Position numbers and translations under genes: made by a program. Of a DNA stretch of 64,000 nucleotides, positions 17,571 through 55,000 are shown piece after piece. The notes under the pieces are model-generated. The model saw only the letters and a program-made list of their open reading frames with translations. It ran no database searches and was not told the origin of the DNA. The DNA is from Oopsacas minuta (Eukaryota > Animalia > Porifera). The stretch is from assembly GCA_024704765.1 (NCBI GenBank), contig JAKMXF010000022.1, positions 186,001-250,000 of the forward strand, written 5' to 3'. The stretch's first letter is position 1, and every line of letters begins with the position of its first letter.

Positions 17571-19086
17571 GTATCACTTAGGCTATTATAAATAATAAAA
17601 TAGGATCAATGTTCTCGTCACTCCAGGACATATACTCGTGTCTCGGAAATTAGTCATATGTTCGGGCAAATTTGAAGCCAAAAAAGTCAGTTTAACTAAT
17701 AAAATCCCTGAACGCGCAGGTCTCATGGCTAGTTGATCTTATACACTAATAAAACTTTGGGGTAGAGGCACCCACACATACACTCAGAGACACATAAAAA
17801 TTATATAGCTGTGATTAGGGGCGCCGAACTCTCCAACTACTTCAACAACCCAGCTTATGCATTATTGAGGGGGGCTCAAGTCGCCTATGACTGTAACACA
17901 AGATTGTGCAATAATATTTTAAGCATCCACTCAATTTGTATTGAAGTACGTATAAATTGTATTTTGTCAAGCTAATGCACTTTCCGAATCTACAATCACA
18001 AAAATGTCTACAGCCCCTACGATCCTTCTGTCAGTCACTGTTTGTGAAGGCGAGCGTTAGTTTCAAATATAACAGAAATCAACGTCGTACGACTGCCACT
18101 GTCATCCGCAAACCAAAGATGTCCTACCCTTCTTACTTGTGCCCAAATGATAAATCCGAGGAATAGTATGAATCCTCAAGTTTTGAGCGATTTCAAAACA
18201 CACTACCATTATATAGAGGGAGAGGCGGAGAGGGCTTCCACTAATTTGAGAAAATCTGGATTGACATCAAATGGCGTTCATAAAATCAGTATTAACAATA
18301 TATGGTCAGATAGGTTTGCCATTATTAATTTATGTCATGGTCTTTGGTAGCCAGGAAATTATTAATTAATATAGCCACGGTCGTAACCCAACACCAAGTA
18401 CAAAAGATCAAAAGATGTCAAAACTTATTTCGATTGAGTGTGATGGAAGTTGAACCTCTGGCCCCCTCAAAATTTCACGCGATCCCGGGTGCATGGATAC
18501 GCAATGACAAATATGCTTTAGAAGCAGTTGGCAATATGGGTATATGGCATGATTCTGTTTGAGGATTACAAGTGTATACACTTTCACTTATCAGCCCCTT
18601 TCAATTATTTCTAAAAATGAATACGTAATACATAAACTCGTACTACGAAGTGCAAACTAGGAAATGGGACCTCGATTCCTCTAAGATCCCTTGGTGTGTT
18701 GTGTGAACTGGGACTACTAACTTTAATATTCCCAATCATAAAACGCAAACTTGTAATATTTGCGTTAAAACACTACATCATTGCAAAAGGAATAATCAAA
18801 GCAACACAAGTAATGCAGTAATATGCTGAGCATCATCATTGTTTTGAAGAAACCATGAGAAAACCACAACCCTCCTATATCAAGCTTGTTCTCATACTAG
18901 TGAATATCTCAACATATTTGTAAATAAACAAGATGCTTCTATAAATACCTCTACTTAGTAAAATAACTACCTTTTGCTTTCATAAATATATGTTCTAACT
19001 TTTCGTCTTCACACATTATTGATATTTGAACAATTAAGATGTTTGTATTTGGAGGAAGAAGCTCACACCTCCACATCAAACTCCTC

Positions 19087-22000
19087 ATGTATGTGACTAT
19101 GTTTTTGATTATTTTATTTTGCTCTCCTCTCGTCCAATCTCAAACGTGCAATGACATAACACTCGAGTTCACTGGTGTTGGAGCTGGTGGATACTCACAC
19201 AGTACTACCTTTCCAGAAGATGGTGATCCTGTCAAAATCGTGCCAGATAATGTAATTTTTACATCTACCACTAACATACTCAGTATTCAGATCGTTTTAG
19301 GTTTGTTTACTATTATCTCACGTCGTTACGCTCATGGATAATTATTTTATTTCATATTTGATGTGTTTGTATTTTTAGGAATATTTCGCTTCTCGGGTAC
19401 AGTCCCAGACAGTGAAAAAATTTTTATTCCTACCAATGATAGTTTCACACAGTTTGTAATAAATTATGGTGAAATACCCAATACTCTCTATATCAGGGCT
19501 GTAGATACCCAAGGGCTACCTGCCGGGGAATATATTGCACCATTACAAGAGATTGAATTCATATTGTATGGGGAACCACAGCCCCAAGAGAACAGATTTA
19601 CTATCTTTGCCATATTCGCTGCTTCAACAATTCCTTGCTTCATAGACTCAAGTGAGTATATTTGCGATTATTTACTTCAATAATTATTTATAGTTTATAT
19701 TGTTTGCTCCCTCTAGCTTCCGCGGGTACTCTCATATTCTTAGATCTAATCAATGATCCGCCAGAGCTAAACTTGTTCGGAGACTTTACTGAAACTAGAC
19801 AAGAATTTGTTTTTACTATTGGAAGAGATACTTCCATTCCATTCTATATTCCTCCAGTGGAGCTATTTGATCATGATTCTGAATTTATTTGTAATCTTAC
19901 AGTAAGTTTATTAGTAATTTCCCTACAAATCATTGATTACTGTGACTATTCCCACTAGGTACTCCTAACTAATCGTACAAGTATGAATGAAGTACTTGTG
20001 ACGTCATCTTCCCTCCCCTTTACTAATGCAACTCTATCATCTTCCTCCTATCAACTGGTTCTAGACTTCTCTCCCTCTGGCATGTCTTTCTCTGTACTGG
20101 AAGATGCTATTGAATCCCTCACCTATGAAAATACGGACAATCCCTCTGTTATTGGAGAACGTTATATTTATACTTCTGTTTCTGATTGTAAGTTTACTCA
20201 ATACTATTCAGGAATACATTTCAATTTATTGGAGCCATTTGGAAGGGAAGGAGACGGAAATATCTGGATCCCTGGGGCCGTTATATGTTGAAATATTTGT
20301 AACAATAACTTAAGTGTAATTATTTTATCGATTTATCCTCTAGGCTTTGCATATAGCGCTCTATACATCTCTACTATACTGGTTGTATTCCCGAATGACA
20401 ACACTCCATTGTTTGATTCTCCTAGCTATACCTTCTCAATACTAGAGAATTCAGCTGCTCAGACTCCAGTAGGGAGTGTAATAGCTACTGACGGAGACGA
20501 TCCCACTAGTCCACAGGGACAAATAGAATACAGTCTTATAGGATTTGAAACTCAGTTTTCTATAAATACAGAAACTGGTGAGTAATTATCTTTGTTTACT
20601 CATTTTCACCTGTCAGATTGTTATAATTGTTATAATTTAATTTTTGTGTTCTATTTTCTAGGTTTGATCAGAAGTAATCTTGTCCTAGACAGAGAAGCTA
20701 AACCCGATTACTTATTAACAGTAGTTGTTACAGATAAACCTCCTTTCCTTCCTAAATCTTCTACAGTTAGTTATATACTACTGCTGATACAATTTTAACA
20801 TTAATAACACGTAATTATGTGTAGGTTAGCGTTACTGTGCTTGTGGGTGATGAAAACGATAACCATCCTCAGATAATCCTCTCTACTCTCTTGATAGTAG
20901 TACCTGAGGATACTGTTGTATCAGGAGGGGGTGTGGTTATTGGTACCATCCGTGCGACGGATAATGACGATCCTAACACGGTTAATTCTCAGATTGTCTT
21001 CAGTTCACTTGACAATACAGATCCTTTCGTTATCAATATCGATGGCTCTGTCACTCTCACCTCTCCGCTAGACTTTGAGAATCAAACTAATTATGAATTT
21101 ACTGTTACTGCTACAGATGGAGGTAAACATATATTATATAACATTATTTATGGGCACCCTAATCGCTATTATTTCTTAATTAGGAGTTAACCAAAGATCA
21201 GTCACAGACATGCTCACTATTCAGGTGTTGAATACAAACGATGAATGTCCTGTATTCATACATGATGACGGTATAGGAGGTAGCATTAGATACACGCAGG
21301 AAGGCTCTGTGATAATAGCAGGGGATGATATAACTCTTAGTGATCCTGATGATGACGTCATCGCTGGTGTTACAATACAAATGTTATCTGATGATGATCC
21401 TGTAAGTATTTTGAATAAATATTCTTCTTCTAGGCATGGATAATATTTGATTAAATCTTGTTTCTTAGCCAAGGAGTTATCCCGTGGATGCTGCTTACTG
21501 TCGCTATGGTTCCACAACAGACCCTGAATTCTGTCTACCGTCTAGTTCCAATAAAATAGAGCTACTTACTCTACCTACACTACTGAGATCATATACTGGA
21601 TCCAATCCTGGTAGCAGCTCTTTTGCCAGTGACAGGTCAGTAATCTCTAATCAACACATCAATACTACAGTATGGTATTCCTCAGTATGGTATTCCTCAG
21701 TATGGTATTCCTCAGTATGGTATTCCTAAGTTCCTTAAACACAAGTACTTCTTAATTTATTAATCAAATTTTTCAATGAAGCGATTTATTTATTTCGAAT
21801 AGATAACGTATGAACATTTTAGACATTTTATTCCTTGAATTACTCAGAGATAGAATCTCTGAATTGACTAAAAATATTTCAAATTGGTAAGCAAATTCTT
21901 TTCTTATACAAATGTTTTACCGTTTAAATAGTCTGATCCTCCCGCCATGTAAACAAGTATCACTATATCACTTTATGTTCTATAGAGAATATCAGACAAT

Positions 22001-25000
22001 CTCTTCCGATCACTACCTCGAGTTGACTGACATAACAACTCTCTCTCCTCCAGAGAACCCACTCACTGATAACTTCACCTTCACAACTTGGATATACATA
22101 GAGGATACCACAACTGACTATGAGTATCTATTCAGTATTAATAGCGGCCTTAATCGTTATCTGGCATTCACTATAGCTAAGTCAAATCGGTTTGAGGTAT
22201 ACTATCGAGGCACAAACACACTGGTATCAGTCAGTAGACAGATTGTTAGAGTCAACTTTAACCTGGATCCCCCCTTCTTAAAAGACACCTGGCATTTCAT
22301 TTCAGTAACCATGTTGTATCCTAACATAGACGTTAGTATAAACTGCAAACAGATCTCTCCTTTTAGAGTTGTATACTTTGATACTAGCAACAACAAGATG
22401 ATTGATAACGACAATCTTGTTATGCCATTTCCTTTTGCTAATTTTTCAAATTCAGCTGTGGTAAGTATTACACACACAAATAACTTGATGTTATTGTGTT
22501 GTTATTTTGATTTATGTATACGTATAGACTGCATATATATTCACAAGACAGAGCAAGTCTCAGTACACCACACAGGGGAGAGAAATCCTTCCTACATTCC
22601 ATCGTCGCATTTTAACTTTTGAGGAAGTGTGTTGCCTCGCATCTTGTGGTCACTTATTCGATGCTACTGTCCCTGGTGGGGTTACTAAATCCTTTGACGG
22701 AGTTACTCGTACTCTCACGCTTTCAGGGGAAGCATCATTATCTGAATACCATGATATCGTAAAGAGTTTAACTTACAGCAATTTGAATCTGGATCCTGAT
22801 TCTGATGAAACAGTTCGATTCCAGGTTTGAATATTTCCAATTTATTGTCTGATAAAGATATATCTGTTCATTTATATTTCATTTTGATTGTAGGCTTACG
22901 ATTCGGTATGTCTTGGCCCCTCATTAGATGTTCCTCTCGTGATTGATGTGTCTAATTTCAACCCACCAATCCTCTTCCTGAATGGATCAGAACAGCAGAA
23001 CATATCAATAGAGTTCAGAGAGACTCCTGTACTTCCTCGTGAAGCAATACCAATAACAACACCAGATAGTATCATAACAGATTTAGATACAATAGCACCT
23101 CGTATCAATAATATTACAGTATCATTGATTGGAGCAGTAGACCTGACTGAACAGATTATATTTTCTGACGTGCTCTCTCATCCCAGTACTATAGTAGCCA
23201 ATAGAGACAGTCTTACTGAGATCACGCTAGTAGCCCTGGCAACTCCTACTGTTGCACATTTTCTTGCTATTCTAAATGACATACGTTATTCTAACGACGA
23301 ACAAGAACCATTCCCCGCACAGAGAATAGTTGAGTTCAGAACTTCAGATGATCGCTTCACAAGTCTTTCTATCACTACTATCGATGTGATTGAAGTTAAT
23401 GATATACCAGTTCTATTCCTCAGCTCTGCTATGGTGACAGATACTGTTCTTGCTAGTTACACACAAGGAGCTCTGCCTGTACTGTTCATATTCGGAGCTA
23501 GCATTGTTGATATAGATAGTAATATTGTTAATGCTGTGATTACAATACAAACATTTGACAGTGGAGAGGAGATCATTTCTGTGAGCCAGAGAGAAGCTGA
23601 TGATAATGGCATTACCTTCAGTACAACTACAAATGTAGGGGGAACAGGTGAGTTATACGGTAGAAACAAGAGACATTCATAAATCTGAATACTATTGAAA
23701 TCATAGGCGAAATACTAAATTTTAATTAAAGAAAACCCAAAAATAAGATTGCTTGTATACAGAAAACACAAATATAATATTTAATTGGAAAGTTAAACTC
23801 TCCCCGAGTCAATGGGTGTGCATGTGATTGAAATTTTGTATTATCTGTATAGTAGTTACACAGATTAACGAGAATCTACCTTATATGTAGTATATGTATC
23901 ATTTTACAATAATTATATACATCTATATTACAGGTACATTCAGTGTATTGACTCTAGAAGGCAATACTACTCCTGATTCATTTGCTCGGGTGTTACAGAC
24001 AGTTTCTTACATACACACGGGGCGTGGAACTGGATCCTCAGATGATCCCCGGGATGTTGAGATTTACGTAACAGACTCGAGAGGAGGTGTTAGTAAAGCC
24101 AGACTAGCTTCCATAACGCTATTTGTCAAAACTCTAATCAAATATTTCCTTAACTATCCTACTGACACGAATTTATTTAACACAACATTCTGTGAAGATG
24201 GTCCTGATGTTCCTATCGTGGGTAACGTGTTATTCTCCATTTCTGAGTCTATACCAACTAATATCATTGAGCTCAGAGTTCGTATTAACGAGCCAATTAT
24301 TGATGATGATGATCTATTGATTGATAGGGTACCAGCTGATAAAATTATCATTGCTAATAGTCAGCTATCATTAGAGATCAATACAGCTCAGAAGTTTATC
24401 ATAGTCTCTGGTATCGCATCACAAATTCCTTATCAGAATCTCTCACGTATGTTGAAATGAATAGTTAGTTTAATATACACTAAACTCCCATTATCTCGAA
24501 GCTTAAGGGATCGCGACAATCAATTCGATATAACCGATGACATTTATGTACTCTGATTTTGGCACTTTCGTTTGGGACTTTATTTGTTAATTTCAGACTT
24601 CAATATAAATGGGTATTTCGATATATCCTTGCTCGTTATAACGGAAGATTTGATTAATTACGCTATCTATGTACTTGTATTACAGAGTTGATGTCTTACC
24701 ACAATCCTGAGAACCCAATAGGAGAGCCAGAAGTCTTGGAGCGTCTGATTGAATGGTCCGTGAGTGATACAGATCCTGACACTATATACTTTGGTATAAC
24801 CCGAGTATCAATCTTGCTTAAGAACGATAACCCGCCAACTATTACTAACATAGAGACCAGCATCCCAGTCCTTGAGAACATTACAGTACCTTCTTTGATA
24901 TACGTGCTCACAGGATCTGATCTGGATACAGGGATAGATGGAGAATTCTATTTTCTGTTACAAAAAATAGACTCTGTGAATAAGTTCAATCTACAGAGTA

Positions 25001-28000
25001 CTGGAGAATTGTATGTGTTAGAGAGTCTAGATTATGAAACACAGACTACTCACTCTATCATAGTTACCATTATGGATAATGGTATGTTAGTATATGTGTG
25101 ATTATGATTAATACGATTATTAAATATTCTAATTAGGAACAACACAATGTGATGGTCCTGGGCCTCTACAGACAAATTACTCCATTACAATAGCAGTTCA
25201 GGATATTAACGATAATCCTCCTATCTTCAACTCTCCTTTATTCGCAGAATTTGAGGAGAGCAGAACTGGATATGTTGTCACTCCCAATGTAACAGATGCT
25301 GATTCAGGAGTTAATGCTATATTCACTCTAACTATCGCGTCAGGTAACACAGTGGTGTTCACTATAGTCAATGGACTGGATATACACGTGCTTATGGAGC
25401 TAGACTATGAAACACAAACTAATTACACACTACAACTAGAAGCAGTGGACCAGGGATATCCCTCTCTTACTTCTCTCACTAACTATATTATACAAGTTAT
25501 AAATGTTAACGATGTACCTCCTGTATTTATCCAGCCTCCTCTTTCCGCTACATTAGTCGTAAGTGTATCAGAGAATACACTACAGCAGGACATATTTATA
25601 CTGGAGGCTTTTGATGGAGATGCTCCCCCCTTCAATGAGATACGATTCTACTTTGCTCTTAACGTCCCTCAATTAGTTCTACAACACTTCTCTATTGACC
25701 CTATTACTGGAGGATGTGATGTAGTAGTAGCAGTAGACCGTGAGAGTACCCCTCAGTTTAAATTTGATGTACAGGCGTTTGATGGAACCTTTAACACTAC
25801 TGCTACCGTACAGATTGATATAGCTGATGTTAATGACAATCCTTCTGTTTTCCAACCTCCTTTCCAACTGTCTGTTCCAGAGAATGCCAGTAATGATACC
25901 TTAGTTGGTACTCTTCGCTTTACGGATGATGACATACCTCCTAACGATGCTGCCACCTTAATTATAATGAATACTCTCCTTCCCTTCAAATTGGAGATGA
26001 TTGATGGTCAGTCTGCTCGTCTGCTCGTGGCTGGAGAACTTGATTATGAAACGGTACCGAATTACACAGTTGTCATAATCGCAATAGACATAAACGGAAA
26101 CATGTAAGTTATAATACAGTTGATAATTACTACAATATTATTTCTTACTGCTTGTGTGTAGAGTCAATCAGAGTTATTTTGTACATATCTTAAACGTTGA
26201 TGACAGTGCTCCTATCATTCTATTAGACGTATCTTCTCGTACTATTTCTGAGAGTACTGTACAACCTATGACGTCAGATGTTTTCTCAGAAGCTACTGTG
26301 TTTGATCCTGACTTATTGCCTGTACGCTACTTGACGGTAGGAGTAGCAGATGAGAATGATGAGTTATTTTCACTTCCTCGCTGTACTCCAGATGGAATAG
26401 CTGATTCTTGTGGAGATGCTTTAACCAATCCTTTAACTGCAGAGTGTATCACTAATTGCGGATACTATCTCAATCTAGATGCTGCTAGCTTTCCGCAACT
26501 ACAGATATCTCTTGATGGGCCATTAGGAATATTGGAAATCATCTCTCTATCATGTAAGCATATATATACGATATATTCAATAAATATTGACTATCCAATT
26601 AAATAATATTCTCTCCTCGTGTAGCTATATCTGTGGAAGAGATGAGCAGTGTACTTCAAGCAATAGAGTACTTGGACTTACGAGATGAGCCAGGAGACTT
26701 AAACATTAGAATAATTGCACAAGCTGGTGACAACTTCCAATTCGGGCCATTCTCTGCTTTCGATATCACCATACAGCCTGTTAATGATCAAGCCCCAGTG
26801 CTAGATTTGAGTGCAAGTGAGAATACAACTTATAATATCCTAGGAAGAATTGATTACTATGAGGAATCTGGTGCTCAGACCTTCTCGACTGATCCTTCCA
26901 TATTTGATGCTGATCTACACACAGAATTTGAGGTATTTGAATAATACCTTAATTGTATCAATAGCAATTTATTTATGACTATTGTCTGCAGGTCGTTTCT
27001 ATTATTGGATTTCTAACTGGTGAAAACGTCCTATCTCCCTCTATTAGCTATAATGTATCATTCAATAGGACAGAAGCATTAGACTTCTTACGTGATTATC
27101 CATTCGAAGATTCCAGAAATGAACCAGGGATGTGTTGGAATGCTACAGATACTCAGTTGGATATTTCTGTTGTCATAAATGACAATACATTTGACAGCAA
27201 TCCTGCTATAATATATGTATTGATCATTTGTATAAACGATGCTCCTATCTTAGACCTAGATATACTCAATCCTGGGATTGATAGTGTATTTGTCTTCGTA
27301 GAAGATTTTCTATATTCTCCCGTATTCAATGCTTCAGTTATATCATTCACTGATTCAGATTCCACTCTCTTCCATAATGCGACTGTGTCTCTCACGAATC
27401 GTAAGGATGGGCCAGAATATCTATCCTTCTACCACTCAGGTGTAGGACTAGACTATACCATATATGGTAATAATTCTGAAGTAATATCGTTCTATAGTCA
27501 GCAAGGGATTACAGCACAAACAGTAAATCACTGGATATATAGCATAACTAATAAACTGATTTATTTCTCCTTCATTCTAGGTATTGCAGTTCTTCTCTTG
27601 GGTGTATTATGTGAATTCTGAGATTAACTTAACCTGTTCAGCTCGAACTATTGAGACAGCTGTATTTGATGGAGAGGACCTCAGTCTAACAGCTGTAACT
27701 CGTGTAGTATTCCAATGTCAGAATGATTTTCCTGAATTATATTTGGATGTTGCTAATATGCAGAAAAACATCAATGTATCCTTTACAGAAGGCTCAAACA
27801 CACCCGTACAGCTGTTCTCTACTATATTCTTGAGAGATATAGATTCAGCTTTTCTGATGTATGCTCAGATTACTGTGCTTGATAAAGTACAAACAAATGA
27901 AGGTATTTGTGGAAATATTTCTAAATATCATATAGTCTTAATGCATTACTATAGGTATTACGATTGATTTGGTAACAACTCAAAAAAGTGTTAACAAGAG

Positions 28001-31000: not shown

Positions 31001-34000
31001 TTGATCTTGGTAAGATTTACTAAATGCATAGTTAACTATACGTATATTCTATCTATGTTATCTTCTGTAGGTCTTAATGCACTGCTGAGGTACAACCTTC
31101 TATCTGGAAACACTGGATCTGTGTTTAGCTTGAATAATACTTCTGGTGAATTAGAACAGATCGCATTCCTAGACAGAGAAATTCTAGACATATATTATCT
31201 AGTGATAGAAGTGAGAGATGTTGGAGTTGTGTTCTCAAGGCTTATAACATTTACACTAACAATATTAATCATGGATCTTAACGATAATACACCAATAATA
31301 ACTCCTGAGACTGCTAGTAAAGGCGTCAGCGAGACTACCATCGTAAACACCTTACTTATTGAATTCTCTCTCCTAGACAGAGATATTCTTATGAACTCAC
31401 AACTCCTGCTTGAAGTAGATTCTCCAGTATTTGGAGTCAGACCTGATGACGTGTCTGGTTAGATTAATTATTAACAATTAACTCTTAATTTTTTTCACAA
31501 TTGATGATTTTATTATTCTTCTCTTATATAGCAAATCCTGAAGTGAAAGTAGAGCTATTTCTGAATCAGGGGCTTGACTTTGAAGCAATACAGCGATATG
31601 ACATAACACTAACTGTTCGAGATCAGGGCTCCGTACCAAGATACAACTCTGTTAACATAACAATAATTGTACTTGATGTTAACGACAATCCAACTAATAT
31701 TACTTCTATTCCTGGGATCATACTGCATTACTGTGAAGATCAAGAACCTGCACCTATTTTCATTGGCACTATTAGCGATCTAGATTCTCTAGACTATTAC
31801 GGACTATCTGTCATGATCAGCAATCCTATCAACTCAGGTTTGGAAATATTAGATGTTGATCTAACAGGAATAGCTGCATTAAAGTACTACGATATTACTA
31901 CGCACTCCCTGTTTGTGATTGGTACATTGAGTCCAGATATCTACGATACTATCTTATCCCTGGTTGTATATGAGAACTTGGCAAATGAATTCACTGGGAC
32001 ATACAGAAATCTAGATATTTATATTGAGACTGACGTAATTACTAACATCCCAGATCTCCCCTCATTCAACTACACAATTAACCCTAATACGCTGATTGGT
32101 AATCCTGAATTAGCTGATATATTTGATAATTTACAACAAAATGTAAGTTGTGTCATACTTGTACTTTACTTAGTGCTTGTTCGTTTTACCTTAATTTTCA
32201 AATTTCTATCACTTCGCTTATACTACACTGTTCTACAGGTGATGAATATTGCACTCTTTTCTACAACTCTGGTGTTGAATTGCGTTAATGATGCACCTGA
32301 ACTTCTCGGTGATTCAGTTCTGAGTCCAATTGACGAGGACACACAAACCAGAATGTATTTAGTTAGAGAATTGACAACTCCGATCACTACAGACGATAAG
32401 AAGAACGGATGTGAATTCGACATTCCCCCACCTCCCCAATTGGGACTTGTCTTTGTAGATGTACCAACTGAACACACAGTATATATCGGTCACCGTTATG
32501 AATTTTATGTTACTTATCCTCCCTTCCTTGATGATATATTAGTCACACTGATCCTACATTCTAATGAGACAGTAGAAGTACAAGTAGAGGGTCTAGGTAA
32601 GAATTCTTGTAATTTGGGCCAAATAATACTTAATATATTGAATTTTTGATTTTGTAGAAGTCCGAGAATTATCATTCACTTTGAGGATGATACTAACATA
32701 CAATAACCAGCCTGTTATCATTGATTGTGAATTTATAGTCACCGAATCTGAACTAGAAGTAAATGGTCTTACCTTTCAGATAACTATTAACAATATAATA
32801 TATCCACTAGTTGTACTGCCAGGAGATGAAACTACCATTTATAGATTCCCTGTACCACAGATAATACCATATATTTGGTCTATCCTAACATATACTGGAT
32901 CTGTTACAGTATTAGAGCCTAATGCTACTGCTCATGTTGCATTCTACCCTTTCTTCACTGCTCTATATAATCAGGCTGCGATTTCTGAAACGAATGCTAT
33001 TCAGATTCCAAGATTTGCTGCGATTAGGATTTCTCCTGCTGAGAATTTCTTCGGAGATATAAGTATAAAATTTAAGGTTTACGATGGCAACGCGTTTAAT
33101 ATGGTGGACTCAAATTGGTCTGATGGATTTGATACTACCATTCCATTCTCTGTATCTGGTTGTCCAGTTTCATTCCAATCAGGAAGATATAGCGATGATT
33201 ATAGATACATAAACTTGACAGTTAATCCAGTTAATGACCCACCAACTGTTGATTGTCCAGATTCTTATTTCACGTTTTATGACGGGTGCTCTGACGTCAA
33301 TATTGGAGGAGATATAATCGTTAATGATATTGATAATCCTGACCTGCAGTGGGCTAGAATTCGTATTAGTCCTGATAATGGTGCTTGTGACTTGGCCTTA
33401 GAGGTTAGTTAGTATAACTCGTATTTTCCCCGTCACAAGTAATTAATATTATTTCCACTTTAGAATCAAATCGATGATCTTTCATTCAACACTGCTCCTT
33501 GGTTCAACTTTATTACTGATACCAGTTTCGGCAATACCTCATGCTCTACAGTGAGGATTTCACTCAACAGTAGTCACACACAGTCGATCTACAAGACACT
33601 CAATAATATCTCATACAGTCCTGCTAACATAGAGCTATGGCAGTGCTATTTACAGCTAGCAGCCTTCAAGCCGGGAGCAGATGAACCTGAGTCATATACC
33701 AGAGCATTGTCTCTGTATGTATTTGATGGATTGAATGCTAGTGACAGCTGTCAGATAACAGTACAGGTAGTGCTTAAGAATGACAACCCCCCTGAATTAG
33801 ACACAGGTTAGTATTCATAGCAAATACGTACTATCACTTTAACCATCTACCCTATTTATTTTAGCTCAAGATTCATTGAACTACACAGAAGAGTCACCAG
33901 CTATCCTATTATTGCCTAACCTTTCTCTAACCGACAAAGATCTCAATTTTCCATTAGAAAAGGTAGAAATTATCTTGACACCTGATTGTGACTGTGTTCT

Positions 34001-43000: not shown

Positions 43001-46000
43001 AAATGCGTCTTTAGACAGAGATTTAGGACAATCTTCCTATTCTTTAACCTTAACTGCTCGAGACTCAGCAGGACTTGAAGACAGTGAACAGCTGGATATT
43101 AATCTTGAAGATGTTAATGACAATGCTGCTGAGTTTGAAGAAGATTTGTATGGGTTTGACATAGTAGAAGAATCCGCTAGCTATAACTTTGGACAGGTTG
43201 CAGCTATCGACATTGACTATGAAGCTAATGCTAATTTCATTTACTTTATCAAAGAAGCTAGAACCACGTTTATAGGTACATTTATACAAAATAGAGATTG
43301 TGCTTTTGATGGAACTTCAGCAGATTTGTTCGATTTCAGAATATATCCGTCTAATGGGTCTCTATTCCTCATGTCACCAGTAGATTACGAAAGCGTTCAT
43401 TTCGTTTCTCTCTCTGTTTGTACCATGAATACAGCGGTCCCATTTTATGAGCGTTGTACTTGTGTAATTGTAGATATACAGAATATTAATGACGTCAGTC
43501 CTGTATTTATTCCTGGCGAAATAAGTATCGATTTGGTTGAAACACAAGGAAATTTGTCTGATTTTAACAGGCTTGTAACATTCACTTCTTTCATGGATTC
43601 TGATGGATTTCAAAGCGATAGCTATTCTCTCTTCATATCACATACTTATGGTTCTCAATTTCCATTCACATTACGTAACATTAACTCTTCAATTACTGAA
43701 CAGGATGGGAGTATAGAGATTACTCGAGAAGTTGTATCATTATCTAATGTAGACAGAGAGACCAGAGACTCATACCATTTCCAGGTCTGTGTAAATGATG
43801 GAATATTTCAAGACTGTTTACAGATTAATTTAACAATCCTTGATGTCAACGATAATCCGCCAATCTTTGACTTAGCAATATTTAACATGTCAGTGAATGA
43901 GCATGAACCTCTTGACTTTCCAATCGATTTTGTGAGTGCTACTGATGCAGACATCGATACTAACTCAGAAATTAACTATTCTCTACTTAACAGTACAAAC
44001 ATATTCTCTATGGATCTAAATAGTGGATTGTTGTCCGTAGTTTCTGACATTAATCGCGAGCCGAATAACAACCTAATCATCCTGATCGTCCAGGCAGTCA
44101 ATATAGTGGAAGGTGTTCCTGTTAGTTTTGGGCAAATCACTTCGATTATTTATGTTTACATACTTGACATTAATGACAACAAGCCTCTATACGATGGCCC
44201 GCTTACAACCTCAGTTAATGAGGATCTTAATAATCAGCTGTTATTCACTGTAGATGCCACTGATGCAGATATCGGTAGAAATGCTCAATTGATTTTCTTG
44301 ATTATTAGTGACCCTGATGACTCATTCCAGGTAGATCAAGATGGATTAGTTAGAAACAATAAATTATTGATAAGAGACGAGCTGAGAGGAGGAAAGATGT
44401 TTTATGAATTCAGTCTTCTTGTATCGGACAATGGCATATATCTATCTCCTCTCAATTCAACATTCCACTTTACTGTTACAGCATTGAATGTGAATTCTGG
44501 TGATCCTGCTATCACCAATCCTTCATTTAATGTTTTTGAAAATGAAGCTTCAGGTACCTGCTTTGGTACACTAGAAGTTAGTGATATAGATTTCCCTCCT
44601 AACTCCACCATTACAACTCAGTTCTTTACATACTCTACAGTATTCTCTGTAGGCCTAGACAGTGGTATTTTGTGTACCAGACAGGTATTAGATCGTGAGG
44701 ATATTCCCTCTCATTCCATTACAATAATATTAATTGATTTGCAACCTACAGCTACAAACACCTCGCAGAGTATAAGTATATTTATCGATGATAGAAATGA
44801 CAATCCTCCATTTTGGCAAACACTTTGTCCTATTTATATACAAGATTCTTTGATGCGATCTGGATTGAAAGTGTTAGAGCTCGTTGCTGGTGATCTGGAC
44901 CTTGGTCCAGATCTCATTTACAGGATAGTTGGTTCTGACTTTGGGTTTTCTTTAACTGAAAATGATCTCTACGCTCCATCAGGAGCCGATGTTAGTGACA
45001 CTGATCAGTTTTGGTTGACATTTTCTGTTGACGACAGTGTGTTTTCCCCAGTACTGCTGGATTGCACAATTTTTGTAACAGACCTGAATGGCTATGATCC
45101 TGTGCTCTCTCCTTCTGAGTACGCAGTTACTGTAATAGAGAATATACCTGTTAATTCTGTACTCGTAAAAGTATCAGCTGTAGATCTTGATGAAGGACTC
45201 AATGGTAATGTATCATTTGAACTTTTGAATGAACTCGGAAAATTCACTCTAGACAATGATGGTGAGTTATAGCAAATTCTTAATTCGTAAAAAATTTATT
45301 ATTTGCTTTTTTAGGGATTAGCTGTGCACTACTGAGACTTGATGTTCCGCTTAACTTTGACAGTCAGTCAATGTATAGTCTAACATTCAGAGCTTTTGAT
45401 ATGGGCTCAGTGAGGAGGTACTCACTAAATGGAACTATTGAGATATTAATAGACGATCTAGCTGATCATTCTCCTGTATTTCTACAACCGAACTACACTA
45501 TGACTATATCAGAAGACACCCCAATACTAACCAAAATTCTAACAGTTAGTTAACTCTATATACGGTATTGTAACAATTATTTAGAAAGTTTTAATTGTTC
45601 TTGCTACAGGTTGAAGCACAAGATGAAGACTCTGGTGATGCAGGTAGTATAACTTATTCCCTGCAGGATACTAACGCATTCTTCATCGACTCTACTTCTG
45701 GAGCAATATTTACACAGTCTCTACTTGACAGAGAAACAACTCCATCTTATATGTTCAGGGCATTCGCAACCGACAAAGGTTCTCCACCTCAAACTTCAAT
45801 TGTTTCCATTCAAGTTAATATCTCAGATGTTGATGACAATTCTCCTACTATTCAAATTTCTAATTTCACACAAATATTTACTGAAGCAGGCAATGCCACT
45901 ACTATTATAGCAGAGAACTCGGATGTTACAATTTCTGATCATGACGATATGACTATATTTGGTGTCTACGAGGTACAGGTCTTTTTGGTACCTAACTCTG

Positions 46001-49000
46001 GAGGATCTCAATACCCCTTGCCTGGCGGGTAAGTCATTTCCTGCATTATAATAATATTATCAAATATTTTATCTTTATCGATTACATATACTAACAGTGG
46101 AACACGCATATAACAAATACAGTTATAACGAATTCGAGCTTATAGCGAATAAACTGTGACCGACGAATGGGTTCGTTATAAGCGTGTTCTCATTTCCGTT
46201 AATCTACCCAATCAGCTGAGTTACGCATTAGTTCATACTGTTAGTATTTAGACTATTATGGTATATAACAAACTACACGTATCCTATTTCTCTTTAGATA
46301 TTGTGATCATTCTCTACACACAAGTTTTGACACAATTAATGCACATACAATATGTGGAGACGCTTCAAATATAATAGACACCTCAGCTGTTGATATAACT
46401 GGTAGTGTGAACGAGGTTACTACACCTCTTCCTCTCTTCTCACTTCCTGGTCAAACAGACTCTTATATGTCTTACTATCTTGTTCACTCAAGTAACTCTC
46501 TTAGCAATTTTTCATTTTTCGTTTGGTTCTCTCTATCTAGCATTGATGGCCCGATTTCCTTGGTTAGACAAGAAGGGCAGTTTGAAATTGTAATCACTCC
46601 TGATCCCACAAATTCAAGATACATTATTACAATTTCAAACTCTGTATCATCTATCAACTTTACTCTTTCTGGCTATGAAATAGTCGGTAATGGTTGGCAT
46701 CATTTTGTTATTTTTATGGATGGAGCACAAGTCGGTGTTGATATCGATAATCTTTCATCTTTCTCAAATTTCCAAGTTACCCTTAACACATCTTTACCGT
46801 TGACGTTCGGAATTAACTTGAACGGCCAGATAAATACACCTTTGTTCTCAAATGATAATCACATCTCTGACGCAATTAGCTTTGTTAGATGTATTCGTAC
46901 ATGTGGCGAGTTTATTTCATATGAGGGACCCACTGACCAAATTTCAGTTGTTCGTGCCTTCCGAAAACGTTCCATATTCCTCCGAGTTCTCGCCCCATTT
47001 CATTACCCAGCTATTAACACATATAATATTTTAATGGAAGCTTTAACGAATGTTTATTACGAGAACGTACTTGATGAGCCTAGCTCCAACCCTCGTGTAG
47101 TCGCCTACCAAGTTTCGGATTCATCAGGTTATGGACCGACTACTCAGACAGAACTTTATCCTTTGTTGCTCAATGATAAAGAGCCGATTATTGACCTCAA
47201 CAGTGATGATGATAGTAATGCAGCCTTTGTAACTACATTTGTTGAAAATTCTGGTGGCGTATCCTTGATTCATTTTAGTGCGATTGTGTTGGACCAAGAT
47301 AGCGGGGTTTTCTCTCTAACTTCCATTATTACAACTATCACAAATCCAATTGATTTAAACAATGAGAGACTATTTGCTTTGAATTTACCTCCATTTTACA
47401 CTGCTCAACAGCAAGACTATACCTTAACCATTACATCTACAGTAGATAAAACATTTGACGAGTGGACTGAAGACATTTTGAGAGGAAATGTCATCCACTA
47501 TATCGACGACTTTATTGAGCCTACCAATGGAACACGAGTGATAAGCTTGACTGTGGTGGAAATTATTAATGGGTTTAATTTTACTGATACTGCCTTCATT
47601 TATGTATCTATCCTGGCTGTAAATGACGAGCCTGTGATCGATCTTAACAATCAAGATCCTCTTACAATTGATAGATTTGTTATGTATTTTGAAGGAGATC
47701 TCAATATTAACCTTCTATCTGTTGATGCTCTCTCAATAACAGACTCTGATAACCTCAATCTTCTTTCTGCCGAAATTTGGCTAAGTCCCACGCCAGACGG
47801 TATTCTAGAGTCTATAGACATCATGGATGATCCATCTAGCGGTCTCTCTATTGAAAACAACGGATCAATTACGATAACAGGCAATGCTAGCACTTCTGCC
47901 TACGAGGATATTCTACTTTCCTTGGAGTACGCTAATTTTAACGAGGAAGATCCTGATGATTCCCCTCGTATGGTTCTTATAAGAGTCTATGACACTGATC
48001 AACAACCAAGTGATACTGCTATCGTTTACATAGACTTCTCTGCTATTAACGATGCTCCTATTCTTGATTTGGATGCTACAGATCCTGCTAATGGCTATTA
48101 CACTGTGTTTATTGAGGAGACCGGTTGTGTGTCTATTGTTAATCCATCAGCCTCAATTGTAGATGTTGATAGCGATACGCTAGTTAATTTGACCGTCAAC
48201 TTCAGAGAGGGGAACACCGATATTCTCGAAACTCTCTATGCAAATGATACTGATGGATTATTGGTAGAGAGTGATAATACTGGTGGGATAACACTCTCAG
48301 GGGATAGAGATGTAGCCGATTATATAAGAGTACTACGTTCTCTTCAATATTGTAATGCAGGAGATGAACCGAGGAGTGACGTCATAAGAAATGTTACCAT
48401 ATCTGTATTTGACAAAGAAGGTAGAATTAGTAATATAGCTCTTTCTGAAGTTATGGTAGAGAGAGTTAATGATAATCCTGATCTTACGCTAGGAGGTAGG
48501 ACTAATGCAAGCTATGGCTCATCTTCTGAATTTGTATTCGCAGACCCTATAAACGTCACTGATGTTGACAGTGAACTCTTTTTCCGTGCTCTTGTTTATA
48601 TATTCTATCCTTATGATGGGAAGGACTTTGAAATCATAACATTTGAAGGAGATCTAGGCAACCAAATCACATCTGTGGGTCCAAGTGAGGTTCTGTCAGG
48701 ACAGTTCGAAGGTGCTATATTTTATAATGTTACATTCTTGATACAAGCCAGTGGTCAGCTGGTAGAAGAAGTTATTGCTCGTATACAGTACAGTAACACT
48801 GCTAATAATCCAACTACAAACGAAACTAGGGAGATTTGTGTTAGCGTGTTTGATGTGGATGGTGGAGCTAGTGATTTAACTTGTATAGTTATCTCTGTTA
48901 CCGAACCTAACTTATTCCCACCTCAGTTTCTAAATGAACTACGAACCTTGACCCTGAGCGAAAACACAGCTGTTTCTACCATAATAGACACAGCAAGTGC

Positions 49001-52000
49001 TTCAGATAACGACCAAGATGTCGATCTTACTTACTCAATAGTGTCAGTTGCCTCCGTCCCGGATACTGATACCACTGGGTTATTTTCAATTGACACTTCT
49101 GGTAACATAATTCTACTTCAGAGTTTAGACGCTGAATCTGTTCTAAACTACGAGTTAGAACTTCAAGTCAGCGATAGTGGAATTCCGTCACTGACCGCAC
49201 AAGCTCACAGAACTTTTATACTTTCTGATATTAATGACGTAACTCCCGTCTTCCAGCCTCCTCTGGATTGTAGCATTGGGTGTACATTCTGTGTTAACGA
49301 AGGAGACTCGTTCAGTAGTGTATTGACTGCTACTGATACTGATAAGACAAGTCCTAATAACGTCATTGCTGGTTATGAGGTTAATTCCAATCAGTTCAGT
49401 ATAAACTCTGTTGGGTTACTAACTAACATTAACCCTATTGACTACGAAATATCTCCAATGATATCTCTGATAGTAGGAGCATTCGATGGAGGGATTGATC
49501 CAGGACTGCTAACTGGCGAGATCAGCATTACTATCTGCGTAATTGATCTAGATGATGAAGCTCCTATTTCAACACAACGTACTCATGGTGTTTATATTAA
49601 AGGTTCTGATCCCGTATTTGTTGACCAGTTCTTGGATGTAGTAGATGTTGATAGCAGTGGTTTGGATCAAGTTTCCGTCTCTATCATAATTCCATCCAAT
49701 CCTTCATCTATCCAAGAGGACTGTACTGACACTTGTTTTGACAGGAGATTAGAACTATGTCAAACTTCTCTGGTTGCGATCGATCTATTAGTTCTTGTTG
49801 AAATTGTAAATAATCAATCCGGTGTTTTCTTAGAACCAGACCCGTTTTCAGGCCCCTGTCCTTATATTAGAATCATAGGTAGGGATAGTGAGGGCAAAAG
49901 AGATCACTCTCTAATGGGTCATGGGGTAATATTTGCTAGCCAGCTTCCTACACTTGTTGCTCAGCCAGTGACAATAATCGCAGAAATGTACAACTTTGTA
50001 GGTGAAGGATATCTCTTGTCAATTAATAATGGAGTGAGTCGTCACCTTTCAGTTTGGTTGCGGAAAAGTAGGATTTCAGTTTTTTATACAGACAATGTGA
50101 ATCTATTCGAATGGAAATTGAACACCATTACCCCTGATCTTGTTACTTATACTTTCTTCTCCCTGGTCATTACAATTGATCCAAGTCTTGGAACATCCTC
50201 AAGTGCGGTCCATGTGTACCGAGATGGTAGTGAACTCCCAGGCGGTCTCGCCACATCAAGCTCTTTCAGTGCATTAGAGAATCAAGATATGTCGATTGGG
50301 CAGAGATTCCCAAGTGATAGAACTAGTAATAGAATAACGTCGGGTATTCGTAACTTATTCATTATTCCCTCTCTTCTTCCAGAAACATCTAGAAATTGTT
50401 TCCTACCCTGTCATGAGTTTGTAGATATCCGTACTGAACTGCTCCCAAGCACTGTAGACTTGTCACATACTGTTAACGCTATTGCTTTATCTAACCGAGG
50501 TACATTCAATGACTTCCTTACTGCACTCAGGGCTCTTCAGTTTGTAAGTTTCTTTAACGATCCTGTAACAACAGGTGCTGTATTAGGTTCCGTATCTGAC
50601 ATACGATCTTTAAGGATATTTATAGATGATCCATCTGGTAATAGAAATACAGGAGTCTTACAGGCGTATGTAGCTAACACACTGCTACCGCTAACAATTG
50701 ATCTTGACGACAGTATTTCTGGAAATAATGCTTTCGCTACTTTTACCGAGGATGCGTCAGCTGTTGCTATTTTCCAAGATTTAGGACTCCTGTTTAAAGA
50801 AGGAGAGTTTGCCAGACCGCCTGTACTACAGCTAAAAATTGCAATACTCAACCCATCGGATGGAACAGATGAGTATTTATCTGCTCAGAACTACTCCAAT
50901 ATAATAGCACATGTTGATATTCATGAAATAGTGTTTGTAGGACCAGGTGCTCCTATACACTTTAAGAATGCATTACAAACAGTGACATACTTCAATGAGA
51001 AAGACCTTCCTGACACTACAACGAGAAATATCCAAGTTATGTTCACAAGTGTAGACAATCGTGTAAGTGCTCCCTCTACACTTTTCCTATCTCTTTCTGA
51101 GTCCAATGATTGTCCAAACATATATCTCAACAATGCTCTTGACTCTTCTATAGACCTAGATTTCATCGAAGGTTCTTTCCCTCTGTCTCTCTTCCCTAAT
51201 CTTAATATACAAGATACTGATGGAGAATACATACTACAAGCCTCACTAGAGATAGTTTATTCTACCTACATACAAGGAGAAGATTTTATAACATTTGATA
51301 CAACCCTTGCTCCTCTGGTTAATGCAGTACTATCAGCTGATCAGCGCGTGCTTATAGCAACCCTCAACACTACTATCTTAAATTACCAAACATTCTTCAG
51401 ATCTGTTAGTTTCCAGAGTACTTCTAATCCTCTTCTTAACTCTAATGGAGAAGTAGTTACCAATACTGATAAGAGTTTAATTCTGCTACTAACAGACAGC
51501 TCAGGATCTAATCTGAACTGTCCTAATGGACTAGTTAACCTGTCATTTATACCAATTGATGCCTCACCCACAATTCTACTCCCAAATATCTTAGTTAACT
51601 TTACAGAAGAGAGCAATGCTACAGTACCAATCCTATGGGACCTTACTCTGTCTGATTCAGATTCACTAGCTCTAGGTGAGTAATTGCAATGTACGAATAA
51701 GCTTAATAAGTCAAACAATATCATTTCTGAAACCGAATTCATATCCAGCCCAATTGTGCTAGACTACAATTAGCTGAGTCGTCTATGTTTTGTAAATACT
51801 AAATGTAATTCTTTCATTATTATCATTTTTACATTATTACGTATATGCTCATACTTCTAGGTGATAACAGATTGGTAGTACGTCTGAATAATATAGGAGA
51901 TCCTGGTAATGAGAATTTAGCCATTACAATTGATGGGATCACTGCTAGAGCAACATACTTTGAGTTTACCGGTGACATAATGCTATCAGATGCTCAGACC

Positions 52001-55000
52001 AGCTTAAGAACTGCCACTTATATAAATACTGCTGAAGAACCCAACATATTGAACAGGACTATTGAAGTTAGTTTATACTCAGGGAATGGGAGTTTGTTAC
52101 TTACTGAATACAGGGAAATCTGGATTAAGTATGTCAATGATCATGCTCCTGATGGGAGAAATGAGTACTTATTCACTATCTTAGAAGAATTAGAAATTGG
52201 TACAATAGCACAACAGATAATCCCACAAGATGACGACAAGGACATTAGTCCTAGCTTTACATTTAGCTTCATTGGAAGTGTTTCTATTCCTTTTACATTG
52301 AACTCATTAACAGGGGAGTTGACTGTGTCTTCTCGGATAAGTTTTGAAGTTATGGCTAGCTACCAGTTTGATGTGAGTTAATTATAAAAACATTTCTTGT
52401 GTTTATTAGTTAAAATATCTTTTGTATTTAGGTTATGATTAATGATGGTGGTATAAACGGAGAGAATGAACTAACAGCTGTAGTAAAAGTAGTCATAACG
52501 TTAGAGAACATTCAGGAGAAACCTGAAATAGATCTGAGTCCATCTGATGATACATCAATTGACCAGACAAGTCCTACTTTCTTTATCGTTAATCAAATTA
52601 GTGTTGTGCTATTCCGTGAGAGTGTTACTATAACTGATGAAGATTTCGGGGATACAATTGAGCAAGTTAGAATTAAGTTCCTGAACAGACCTAATGGAGT
52701 ACAAGAAGGACTTCGTGTTGGAGTATCATCGTTGTTATCCACTAGTAATGTGTTCACGATATCTCTATCTGGTATTGTGGATATTTCTGGAGAATTAGCT
52801 AAGATTCAATATTTCAACTCATTGGATTCTCCAGACACACAGACCAGATCTCTTGAAATATCTGCAGTTGATTCTACAGGACAAGTTAGTCAGAATGCAA
52901 ATCTTCAGATTGAACTTCTCACTATTCCAACATTTGGTCTTGAAGAATATAACTTGTATGTTTACGAGAATTCTCTCTTGCCAGATGCTATTCAAATAGA
53001 GGCAGTAGTTGGAGACGGTACCTTTACAGCGTTCCAGTATGCCCTGTCAGGACCAGGATCTGATCGCTTGGAGATATCAGGCGATGGTTGGATATCTGTA
53101 GTTATGGAGCTGGATAGAGAGGGAGAGTACGGACAAACCTTAACGATATCTGTATTGGTAGGTATTAATGAATTTTCACCTCTTATAAATTGCATTATTA
53201 CTTATTTACTATAGGCCACAGATCCTCGTAGTCAGCCCAGGACAGGCAATACAACTATTATTGTAATAATATTAGATACTAACGACAATCCTCCAACTAT
53301 TTCAGGGATAAATGGAACATTTAATCTTTATAGAGATGTAGAGTTAAAGCCCTTCCCAACCAGTAAGTTTGTACAAGTAAAGTTGGAAATATTTCTAAAA
53401 TAACATGTTATATTCCTGTAGCTACTAGCATTACAGATTTGGATACCTCTAATTTAACCAGGATATCAGTTCGTGTGATCGGCATTTACCCTTTACAACA
53501 GAACCCATTCACCTATCTTACTTGTGAAGATGATTTGATAGCAGTCACAAAACATCGGTTTGTTTACTCTGTTACTATTTGCAGTTTATTCCACTTCTAT
53601 TTATACTCTCTCTTCCAGTTCCTGCGGACTCTCTACTATTCCAGATGATCTCACGATTACTGCAATTATATCAAGTGACTCAAACTCAACCAATTTGGCT
53701 GGCAATGAAGTATTACAGATCCGAGAGACTTCTCATGTTTATCTTAATCGTACTTCTGTATTGAACGGTCCTTACACCCACATGACCATTGACTTCTGGC
53801 TCCGCTGGCTTGGCAGTGAAAGTGGTTATATTTTCGCTCTCACAGATAGCCCTGGTTATAAAAGGTGATACATTTGTATTCTCAGTTAATTACAGAAACT
53901 ATTTACAATGTATATACTATTTAGGTATCTTGCTGTCTACTACGATGTAGAAAGGGAACAACTAAGTGTATACTTCAGTGAAGACGGTATTGAACCGGAT
54001 GAAGCTAGAATCAGAGTGCTATGTCCTGTTGTTATTACAGATCAGCGCTGGCATCATATCGCTATTGTAGTAGCATTCCCTAATGTGCGTATTTATGTAG
54101 ATGGAAATGAACTCACGTGTATTATCTATCTGGGGCCAGCTGGAGATATCGAGCATACGTTAGAGAATTCTATAGCAGGTGAGCTACTAATTATTTGTTA
54201 GTTATTCTGGCTAGTTACCAACTCCTCTATTCTGACGTGAAGAGAGGAGATGACACTGAGCCTATACTATCCACTCTAGCAAGCTGCTGTTCTTGTAAAT
54301 AGCATGTCGTTCACCCGTGGGAATATTCATATTATAGATGTTTAATATCATATTATTTCTCAGGTCACCCTATTTCTGGTCCGGAATCTGATGATACTCA
54401 GGTTGCATTCACATTGGGAGCAAGACTACAAAACACTCACTGGACACAGAGAGGAGAGTTTGACATTTCAACCTTCACTGCTGTCCACTACGCTCTCAAT
54501 GCTGATTTCCTGAGTTGTCTATTGAATTGCATGGAGACCTTCGACCTTGGACTAGACTCCACTGGATTAACACAGGTGTGATATAATTAACACCCATGAT
54601 AGAATCATAATTGTGTATTATCCATGGTACAAGTATGTTAGTATAGGTAATTGTTACGCTTCAAAACTGCTTTAAGTTGAAATTTTCAATGTAAATTCAA
54701 AATGATACAGATTTACAGATCAGAAAACCTAAACACACATTGATTAACCATTTAAATTTTAGAGTTTCAACCCGACATCAAGAGAGTACGTGATAGAAGG
54801 AGATTTATCACCAGTTTACGCTACAGAGATAGTTCAAGCAATTTTATATAATAACAAAGCTGATGAACCAAATGTACAATCTCTACGTCTTACAGTATAT
54901 GACGGTGTAGACATCACAAATGGAGACTTACTTGTGTATGTAGGGGTTCTTACTCGAAGAAGACGTGAACTTGATCATATCTTAGAGCCAATTGAGATTA

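Follow-up and report, generated by a model that had tools for sequence, protein, structure and literature searches.

LamG domains nested in a beta-rich repeat of a predicted giant cadherin-superfamily protein from a glass sponge, and their possible kinship with the calsyntenin ectodomain

A stretch of 64,000 nucleotides from the glass sponge Oopsacas minuta (contig JAKMXF010000022.1, positions 186,001 to 250,000; hereafter the window) contains on its + strand what is, as read from the sequence, a single very large gene whose predicted product is a secreted giant protein of the cadherin superfamily. In this protein four LamG domains are each nested within a beta-rich repeat, here named R, forming four composite modules (M1 to M4). 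Two of these modules stand in the order cadherin repeat (EC), cadherin repeat, module, R repeat. The extracellular part of the calsyntenins has a similar order, namely two cadherin repeats, one LamG domain of the laminin/neurexin/sex-hormone-binding-globulin (LNS) type and a further domain (PMC9064300), and calsyntenins are treated as part of the bilaterian toolkit (PMC10734073). Descent of the sponge cassette and the calsyntenin ectodomain from a common ancestor is slightly favoured by the evidence presented below.

Four composite modules with LamG inserts

A preliminary description of this DNA had claimed four modules in which a LamG domain interrupts a repeat. All four were recovered, starting at 21237, 45832, 49554 and 53281, and every motif quoted for them was found in the sequence. 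The modules are as follows:

M1 (canonical), 21237-22950, + strand: first half of R, Cys pair at 21499-21534, LamG domain, CLASCGH at 22633, second half of R; Laminin_G_3 30.8 bits
M2 (divergent), 45832-47171, + strand: first half of R, Cys pair at 46302-46355, LamG domain, CIRTCGE at 46890, second half of R; Laminin_G_3 26-28 bits
M3 (most divergent, a single exon), 49554-50690, + strand: first half of R, Cys cluster at 49722-49760, LamG-like insert, CFLPCHE at 50397, second half of R
M4 (canonical, next to the predicted membrane anchor), 53281-54960, + strand: first half of R, Cys pair from 53520, LamG domain, CLLNCME at 54516, second half of R

Each of the four has a Cys pair 5' of the LamG domain and a C-x3-C-x-E/H motif 3' of it. 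The introns of the modules, with GT-AG borders, were placed by hand. They separate exons 21184-21401, 21469-21635, 21986-22460, 22528-22824 and 22894 onwards in M1, exons 45619-46028 and 46298-47171 in M2, and six exons in M4 (53215-53362, 53422-53557, 53619-53864, 53925-54178, 54364-54575 and 54763-55092), the LamG domain of M4 showing a WHH...YVDG strand at 54049. The M4 splice junction between KHR and SCG was confirmed, because the sequence is contiguous at this point in the ortholog locus L001. Within the intron that splits M1, a 15-base unit is present in 4-5 tandem copies at 21655-21730 (VWYSS in one frame).

When compared with the Pfam family Laminin_G_3 (PF13385, cut-off 27.6 bits), M1 scored above the cut-off. 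M2 was borderline, with 28.0 bits in its long open reading frame (ORF) and 26 bits alone, as was M4, with 24.3 bits from a single 84-residue exon only. No Pfam LamG match was obtained for M3. Pairwise identity among the modules is only 17-21%, and profiles made from M2 or M3 find the other modules at no better than 2-9 bits. A MAFFT alignment of M1 and M4 exon fragments with M2 and M3 (alignment A1) was scrambled and was discarded.

The LamG domain interrupts the R repeat at a fixed site

An R profile of 143 positions was built from 53 complete R repeats taken from the window, from L001 and from related proteins. This profile matched each of the four modules twice, before and after the LamG domain and in colinear fashion, in agreement with the earlier claim that the LamG domain breaks into the flanking repeat:

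M1: residues 11-51 (profile 14-55) and residues 314-386 (profile 67-139)
M2: residues 7-45 (profile 13-49) and residues 306-346 (profile 91-131)
M3: residues 7-51 (profile 14-59) and residues 288-365 (profile 61-130)
M4: residues 27-59 (profile 34-66) and residues 295-370 (profile 60-138)

Independent E-values ranged from 1e-5 to 6e-4 for the first halves and from 2e-10 to 1e-7 for the second halves. The double match exceeds chance, since these values are low and each pair is colinear. The insert, consisting of a Cys bracket, the LamG domain and a second Cys bracket, measures about 230-250 residues and lies at about position 60 of the 143 positions of R, at the same site in all four modules. 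This shared insertion site speaks, at the level of sequence, for a composite module of single origin whose copies came about later by duplication.

The order EC-EC-module-R and its conservation

The local profiles confirmed that the order of two cadherin repeats, module and further repeat, which had been reported as occurring at least twice, is found as R-EC-EC-M1-R and as R-EC-EC-M3-R. The repeats next to the modules are the following:

20397-21122, + strand: two cadherin repeats immediately 5' of M1 (local EC profile at 20397-20579 and 20858-21121; splice junction set by hand)
22957-23397, + strand: complete R repeat immediately 3' of M1 (R profile positions 2-143, 83.6 bits)
48909-49550, + strand: two cadherin repeats immediately 5' of M3 (Pfam Cadherin; local EC profile)
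50685-51104, + strand: complete R repeat immediately 3' of M3 (R profile, 92.8 bits)
47172-48908, + strand: four complete R repeats 3' of M2 (R profile, 74-112 bits each), the third of which, at 48048-48467, carries a match to the calsyntenin family CLSTN_C (see below)

The EC-EC-module order of calsyntenin is seen at M1 and M3. The protein, however, is a giant with four modules, of which the cassette forms an internal part; about 12 consecutive EC repeats precede M2, and a single one (R-EC) precedes M4, after which come RRRR and a tail of the glycosylphosphatidylinositol (GPI) type instead of another repeat.

The ortholog locus L001, from an ENA assembly, is 72% identical over the largest exon and has the same order of parts, including a gene nested on the opposite strand. 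Identity to L001 is 58% for M2, 71% for M3 and 62-87% for the M4 exons. In addition, 1.84 billion protein representatives were searched by HMMER with a profile of the M1 and M4 LamG core (alignment A2). The 93 matches were to fragments of orthologs, to eukaryotic proteins bearing this module and to prokaryotic proteins that have multiple Laminin_G_3 domains. Further module-bearing proteins came from a later alignment search. Against modules of other assemblies, the canonical M1 and M4 gave 33-66 bits and 10-38 bits, respectively, and the divergent M2 and M3 gave 8 bits or less.

The layout R-EC-EC-module-R-R-R-R was found in P0101, P0102 and P0111, EC-EC-module in P0096, and module-R4-EC-EC-R-R-R-EC..., with further parts downstream, in P0031, P0042 and P0079. 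At the site equivalent to M3, the last three proteins have a plain R repeat with a small Cys loop, without LamG and with the same exon layout (P0031 1126-1285, P0042 1140-1297 and P0079 1133-1294). Either the glass-sponge line gained the M3 insert, therefore, or the lines of these three proteins lost it. As judged from these predicted sequences, R-EC-EC-module-R is a conserved cassette in other sponge-like assemblies, within giant proteins too.

A more compact arrangement was found in L002 (ENA ERZ24894575, 4331-10007), where R-EC-EC-module-R-R-R-EC is encoded by one 1345-codon exon. The next exon contains a clear transmembrane segment with a TRR stop-transfer sequence and is followed by possible cytoplasmic exons, one of them with an L-F-D-D-G stretch. 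The L002 cassette looks like part of a compact membrane-protein gene, and an adjoining HECT gene, together with the large size of the contigs, speaks for a eukaryotic origin of these assemblies.

Colinear matches between R repeats and CLSTN_C

The Pfam family CLSTN_C (PF19699) has 354 positions and a cut-off of 27 bits. Five weak matches to this family were obtained, all of them under the cut-off:

R3 of the window: E 0.011, CLSTN_C positions 182-235
P0113: E 3.9e-4, CLSTN_C positions 160-217
P0042: E 0.0039, CLSTN_C positions 161-245
P0031: E 0.026, CLSTN_C positions 150-225
P0104: E 0.06, CLSTN_C positions 184-215

They come from different repeats of different proteins, and in all of them position x of R corresponds to CLSTN_C position x+105 to x+112. 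No other Pfam family recurs colinearly across the R repeats; the only other recurrence was of DUF2420, in two orthologs. Because the five matches repeat colinearly and no other family does likewise, there is good evidence, of a sequence kind, that the region of calsyntenin that follows the LNS domain contains an R-type domain, and part of CLSTN_C very probably shares its descent with the R repeat.

Three word-indexed homolog searches, with the M3 region, the P0096 module and alignment A4, returned sponge-type proteins only and no calsyntenin. The LNS domain of human calsyntenin-1 is presumably surrounded by Cys brackets and NP-x-x-x-x-x-x-EGD motifs of a comparable kind, a resemblance that served as a lead and not as a test, and we take the calsyntenin LNS domain to be filed likewise under Laminin_G_3. 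A full-text literature search for these calsyntenin motifs found no paper, and nothing relevant was found on calsyntenin in sponges or other non-bilaterians. Nor was a paper describing this gene or cassette found in the part of the literature that was covered.

Nature of the R repeat

R is a 143-residue beta-rich repeat without a Pfam family of its own. Scans of the R repeats gave no significant Pfam or NCBIfam match belonging to them, and the R profile found no relative by sequence in the PDB. The repeat had been called Ig-like in the preliminary description: that it is interrupted was borne out, but no solved structure matches it by sequence and the term Ig-like stands as a suggestion only. 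Pfam Cadherin_4, a bacterial cadherin-like domain, reached its cut-off with 27.6 bits at 32642-33409 of the window, apparently in the first half of an R-like repeat.

The R profile made from sponge repeats finds R repeats at 93-120 bits in the bacterial-looking protein P0114, and P0113 shows weak Big_9 and Big_13 matches. Plasmid-borne relatives (H1-H8) carry annotations such as tandem-95 repeat, DUF4347, Ig-like or peroxidase family protein. These matches hint that the nearest named relatives of R are the bacterial cadherin-like, tandem-95 and Ig-like adhesin repeats, and suggest a repeat family common to sponges and bacteria for which Pfam has no model. Among the R-bearing bacterial-looking proteins P0114 and P0115, one is of high GC content and another has GEVED and Chlam_PMP domains.

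The P0114 repeats and the plasmid genes for tandem-95 repeat and Ig-like domain proteins also speak for an alternative origin of the cassette, by convergent domain shuffling. According to this alternative, sponges put a generic Laminin_G_3-type domain into an adhesin repeat of their own, and the order of parts resembles that of calsyntenin by chance. The likeness of R to CLSTN_C would then mean only that a single copy of a widespread cadherin-like sandwich, bacterial in type to begin with, has been retained in calsyntenin.

Predicted structure of the module

Modelling of M3 by AlphaFold with a 2-row alignment gave a mean predicted local distance difference test score (pLDDT) of 31.6 and was unusable. 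The canonical module of a relative, P0102:338-772, was modelled with a 30-row alignment that included exons of the window, and reached a pLDDT of 80.1 and a predicted template-modelling score (pTM) of 0.79. In this model, residues 16-65 form four to five strands (pLDDT 56-73), residues 100-340 a confident jelly roll (pLDDT 85-97) and residues 350-403 four strands and one helix (pLDDT 69-88). The jelly-roll fold was thus obtained for the homologous module of P0102 and not for a module of the window.

The best structural match of the P0102 insert was the N-terminal domain of thrombospondin-1 (Z 17.8, 192 residues, root-mean-square deviation 3.0), followed by the NC4 domain of collagen IX (Z 15.6), sialidase CBM40 and clostridial receptor-binding jelly rolls (Z ~15) and pentraxins (Z ~14). 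Laminin LG and neurexin LNS domains matched at Z ~11. Foldseek related the insert to NEL (E 3e-10), and the structural matches were confined to model residues 82-336. A PDB profile search gave core-strand matches to neurexin LNS, SHBG and laminin LG, and phmmer searches of the PDB with M3, M2 and an M4 exon gave nothing useful. By its modelled fold the insert is a LamG domain of the Laminin_G_3/thrombospondin-N type.

These neighbours do not bear out the earlier view of the LamG domain as calsyntenin-type, since the insert falls with Laminin_G_3, thrombospondin N-terminal and pentraxin-type domains. Taken to the letter, a grouping with generic LamG and pentraxin domains speaks against calsyntenin kinship, but it is not decisive, as calsyntenin was absent from the comparison set; the PDB contains no calsyntenin ectodomain chain. 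Convergence is favoured by the thrombospondin N-terminal, collagen IX NC4 and pentraxin domains as structural neighbours, and also by the outcome of the LamG-core search, in which prokaryotic multi-Laminin_G_3 proteins appeared and calsyntenin did not.

The gene and its C-terminus

On the + strand, open exons with short GT-AG introns between them follow one another in a single chain from about 19,039 to 55,095, and EC, R and module profile matches run along this same-strand ORF chain from 19968 to 54957. The predicted protein is estimated at about 8,000 residues. The remaining features of the gene are:

19039-55095, + strand: whole gene, predicted giant secreted cadherin-superfamily protein (ORF chain and profile matches; order of parts the same in L001)
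19039-19338, + strand: first exon, with Met at 19039 or 19087, a hydrophobic stretch resembling a signal peptide and the start of an R repeat (translation; the signal peptide is putative)
54955-54966, + strand: RRRR, candidate furin-type cleavage site, kept in L001 (cleavage is putative)
55009-55092, + strand: GPI-anchor-type C-terminus with small residues (SFGSGAD), a short spacer and an 18-residue hydrophobic tail (mean hydropathy 2.3) followed by a stop; kept in L001

As read with the local EC, R and module profiles, the domain order is: putative signal peptide, R, R, EC, EC, M1, R, R, R, EC x4, ... in the first part; ..., R, R, EC x ~7, R, ..., R x5, EC and an intron with an opposite-strand gene in the middle part; and EC x ~12, M2, R x4, EC, EC, M3, R, R, R, EC, R, EC, M4, RRRR and the GPI-type tail in the last part. 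Membership of the cadherin superfamily was confirmed by Pfam PF00028, with E 4e-103 and 10 stretches in 40740-45269, and by further matches along the gene. The open exons 26127-27230 and 32100-33580 showed no significant EC, R, module or Pfam match at E<=0.01, except for Cadherin_4 in 32642-33409, and may contain further divergent repeats or another domain type.

The opposite-strand gene lies in the 3.7-kb gap between cadherin exons (36983-40739). It occupies 37088-40417 (- strand) and encodes a coiled-coil protein of 1109 residues, rich in E, L, Q and K, with faint CCDC39, Golgin_A5 and ANG-1 matches. The nesting is kept in the related assembly (L001 456-3779).

It might be asked whether modules of two or more adjacent genes, or of a pseudogene in decay, have been joined by eye into one. 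The gene model was read from genomic sequence alone, it spans the 3.7-kb gap with its opposite-strand gene, and M2 and M3 are very divergent, all of which would fit such an artefact. Nevertheless, all the exons examined are open and joined in frame by GT-AG introns, and L001 keeps the order of parts and the nested gene at 58-87% protein identity, which points to constraint. Furthermore, one signal-peptide-like start and one terminal anchor signal were seen, although neither was searched for systematically along the gene. An artefact of this kind is improbable.

The stop codon is at 55093-55095, and every downstream splice option examined likewise runs into a stop. The C-terminus has the layout of a GPI signal, with small residues at the putative omega site, then a spacer and a hydrophobic tail that lacks a basic stop-transfer sequence. 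This layout is conserved in L001, and the protein is probably GPI-anchored.

This ending also bears on whether the gene itself is the sponge ortholog of calsyntenin. The order of the cassette agrees with such an assignment, and R repeats match CLSTN_C weakly. However, the protein has four modules and about 8,000 residues, its GPI-type end without a transmembrane segment or cytoplasmic tail leaves no site for the W-acidic motifs that bind kinesin light chain, and the CLSTN_C matches are always under the cut-off. The compact relative L002 does have a transmembrane segment, but its tail gave no CLSTN_C match. The assignment of the gene as a calsyntenin ortholog was therefore rejected, and we regard it as extremely unlikely.

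Discussion

The calsyntenins (CLSTN1-3, CASY-1 and Cals) resemble the sponge cassette in their two cadherin repeats, one LamG/LNS domain and further domain, and R matches CLSTN_C 150-245 weakly and colinearly. They differ from the sponge protein in their size of about 1,000 residues and their single module, and they possess a transmembrane helix and a tail that binds kinesin, whereas here four modules are found in a giant GPI-type protein with no such tail.

Other systems share single features with it. In FAT, FAT-like and CELSR/Flamingo proteins, the ectodomain likewise combines LamG domains with cadherin repeats in very long series, and weak Cadherin_FAT4_N and Cadherin_CELSR2_9th matches were obtained here. 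In those proteins, however, the LamG domains are un-nested and lie close to the membrane with EGF domains on either side, and a transmembrane part or a seven-transmembrane domain comes after them, whereas no EGF, GAIN or cytoplasmic domain was seen in the sponge gene. The thrombospondin-1 N-domain, collagen IX NC4, NELL and the pentraxins include the best structural matches of the insert and belong with it to Laminin_G_3, but they are free-standing, mostly N-terminal domains with only 10-18% identity to it. Bacterial cadherin-like, tandem-95 and Ig-like adhesin repeats are akin to R, as indicated by the P0114 repeats, the plasmid annotations and the Cadherin_4 match, but no LamG insertion was seen in them. 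T-cadherin (CDH13) is a GPI-anchored cadherin without a cytoplasmic domain. The likeness to it is limited to this mode of anchoring, as it has five EC repeats and neither LamG nor R repeats.

From the preliminary description, which had put forward a calsyntenin kinship, the LamG-in-repeat modules and the EC-EC-module-repeat order can be retained, whereas kinship of the LamG domain as such finds no support. Through its sub-threshold matches to CLSTN_C, the flanking R repeat is the sole part that sequence searches tie to calsyntenin. Several observations speak against a common ancestor for this cassette and the ectodomain of calsyntenin. The CLSTN_C matches are all partial and remain below the cut-off, the best being 15 bits in the window and 19.9 bits in relatives. 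When R repeats were scanned singly, one of 49 matched CLSTN_C, so that the signal appears only in multi-repeat segments, and the second halves of the modules gave no match to the start of CLSTN_C, a point that convergence also has in its favour. No calsyntenin was present among the 93 matches in the 1.84 billion proteins, although the profile of the M1 and M4 LamG core was weak and gave only 39-50 bits with undoubted sponge relatives. In its fold the insert resembles the neurexin and laminin LNS domains less (Z ~11) than it does pentraxin, CBM40, collagen IX NC4 and thrombospondin N-terminal domains (Z 14-18). That two R halves pack into one sandwich we infer from the profile matches and the high pTM. 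Finally, this gene encodes no transmembrane or cytoplasmic part, its frame ending, as in L001, in the hydrophobic tail and the stop, and the whole argument uses a gene model derived from genomic DNA.

On the other side, convergence would have to account for the coincidence of three features (a run of exactly two EC repeats ahead of the module, a single Laminin_G_3-type LamG domain, and an R-type domain following the module), and for CLSTN_C being the sole Pfam family that is matched repeatedly and colinearly by R repeats. Convergent shuffling is a serious contender that we nonetheless consider doubtful. A shared ancestor of the calsyntenin ectodomain and the cassette is the reading towards which we incline, by a small degree, because both have the same order of parts and R is very probably a homolog of part of CLSTN_C. 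A common origin of the sponge LamG domains with that of calsyntenin we infer likewise.

As for the working of the protein, the EC and R runs would form a long calcium-stiffened stalk, as in known cadherins, along which the LamG domains may be spaced as binding heads for glycans or proteins, by analogy with known LamG domains. M4 would adjoin the membrane, and a furin-type protease cutting at RRRR could set the ectodomain free from the lipid anchor. As the protein has no cytoplasmic tail, any signalling would depend on a partner protein within that membrane.

Even if an ancestor was shared, it is a further and more tentative step, for which the chances are below even, to propose that the whole calsyntenin ectodomain (two cadherin repeats, an LNS domain within a split R-type sandwich and a second R-type domain) was a cassette that preceded nervous systems, and that calsyntenin arose when one such unit was released from a giant protein of this kind and gained a kinesin-binding tail. 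If this were so, sponges would hold the unit repeated in giant GPI-anchored cadherins and also in a compact membrane protein, and their LamG heads may already bind neurexin-like partners.

Independently of that proposal, R represents a sizeable family of sponge and bacterial repeats without a Pfam model or a solved structure, and a domain nested at a fixed loop of an adhesin repeat, then copied to four within this protein, illustrates clearly how binding heads can be acquired by giant adhesion proteins. The origin of the calsyntenins, which are conserved proteins of neuronal adhesion and transport, is unexplained. The sponge cassette would make that origin testable, and would add one more synaptic ectodomain to those older than neurons.

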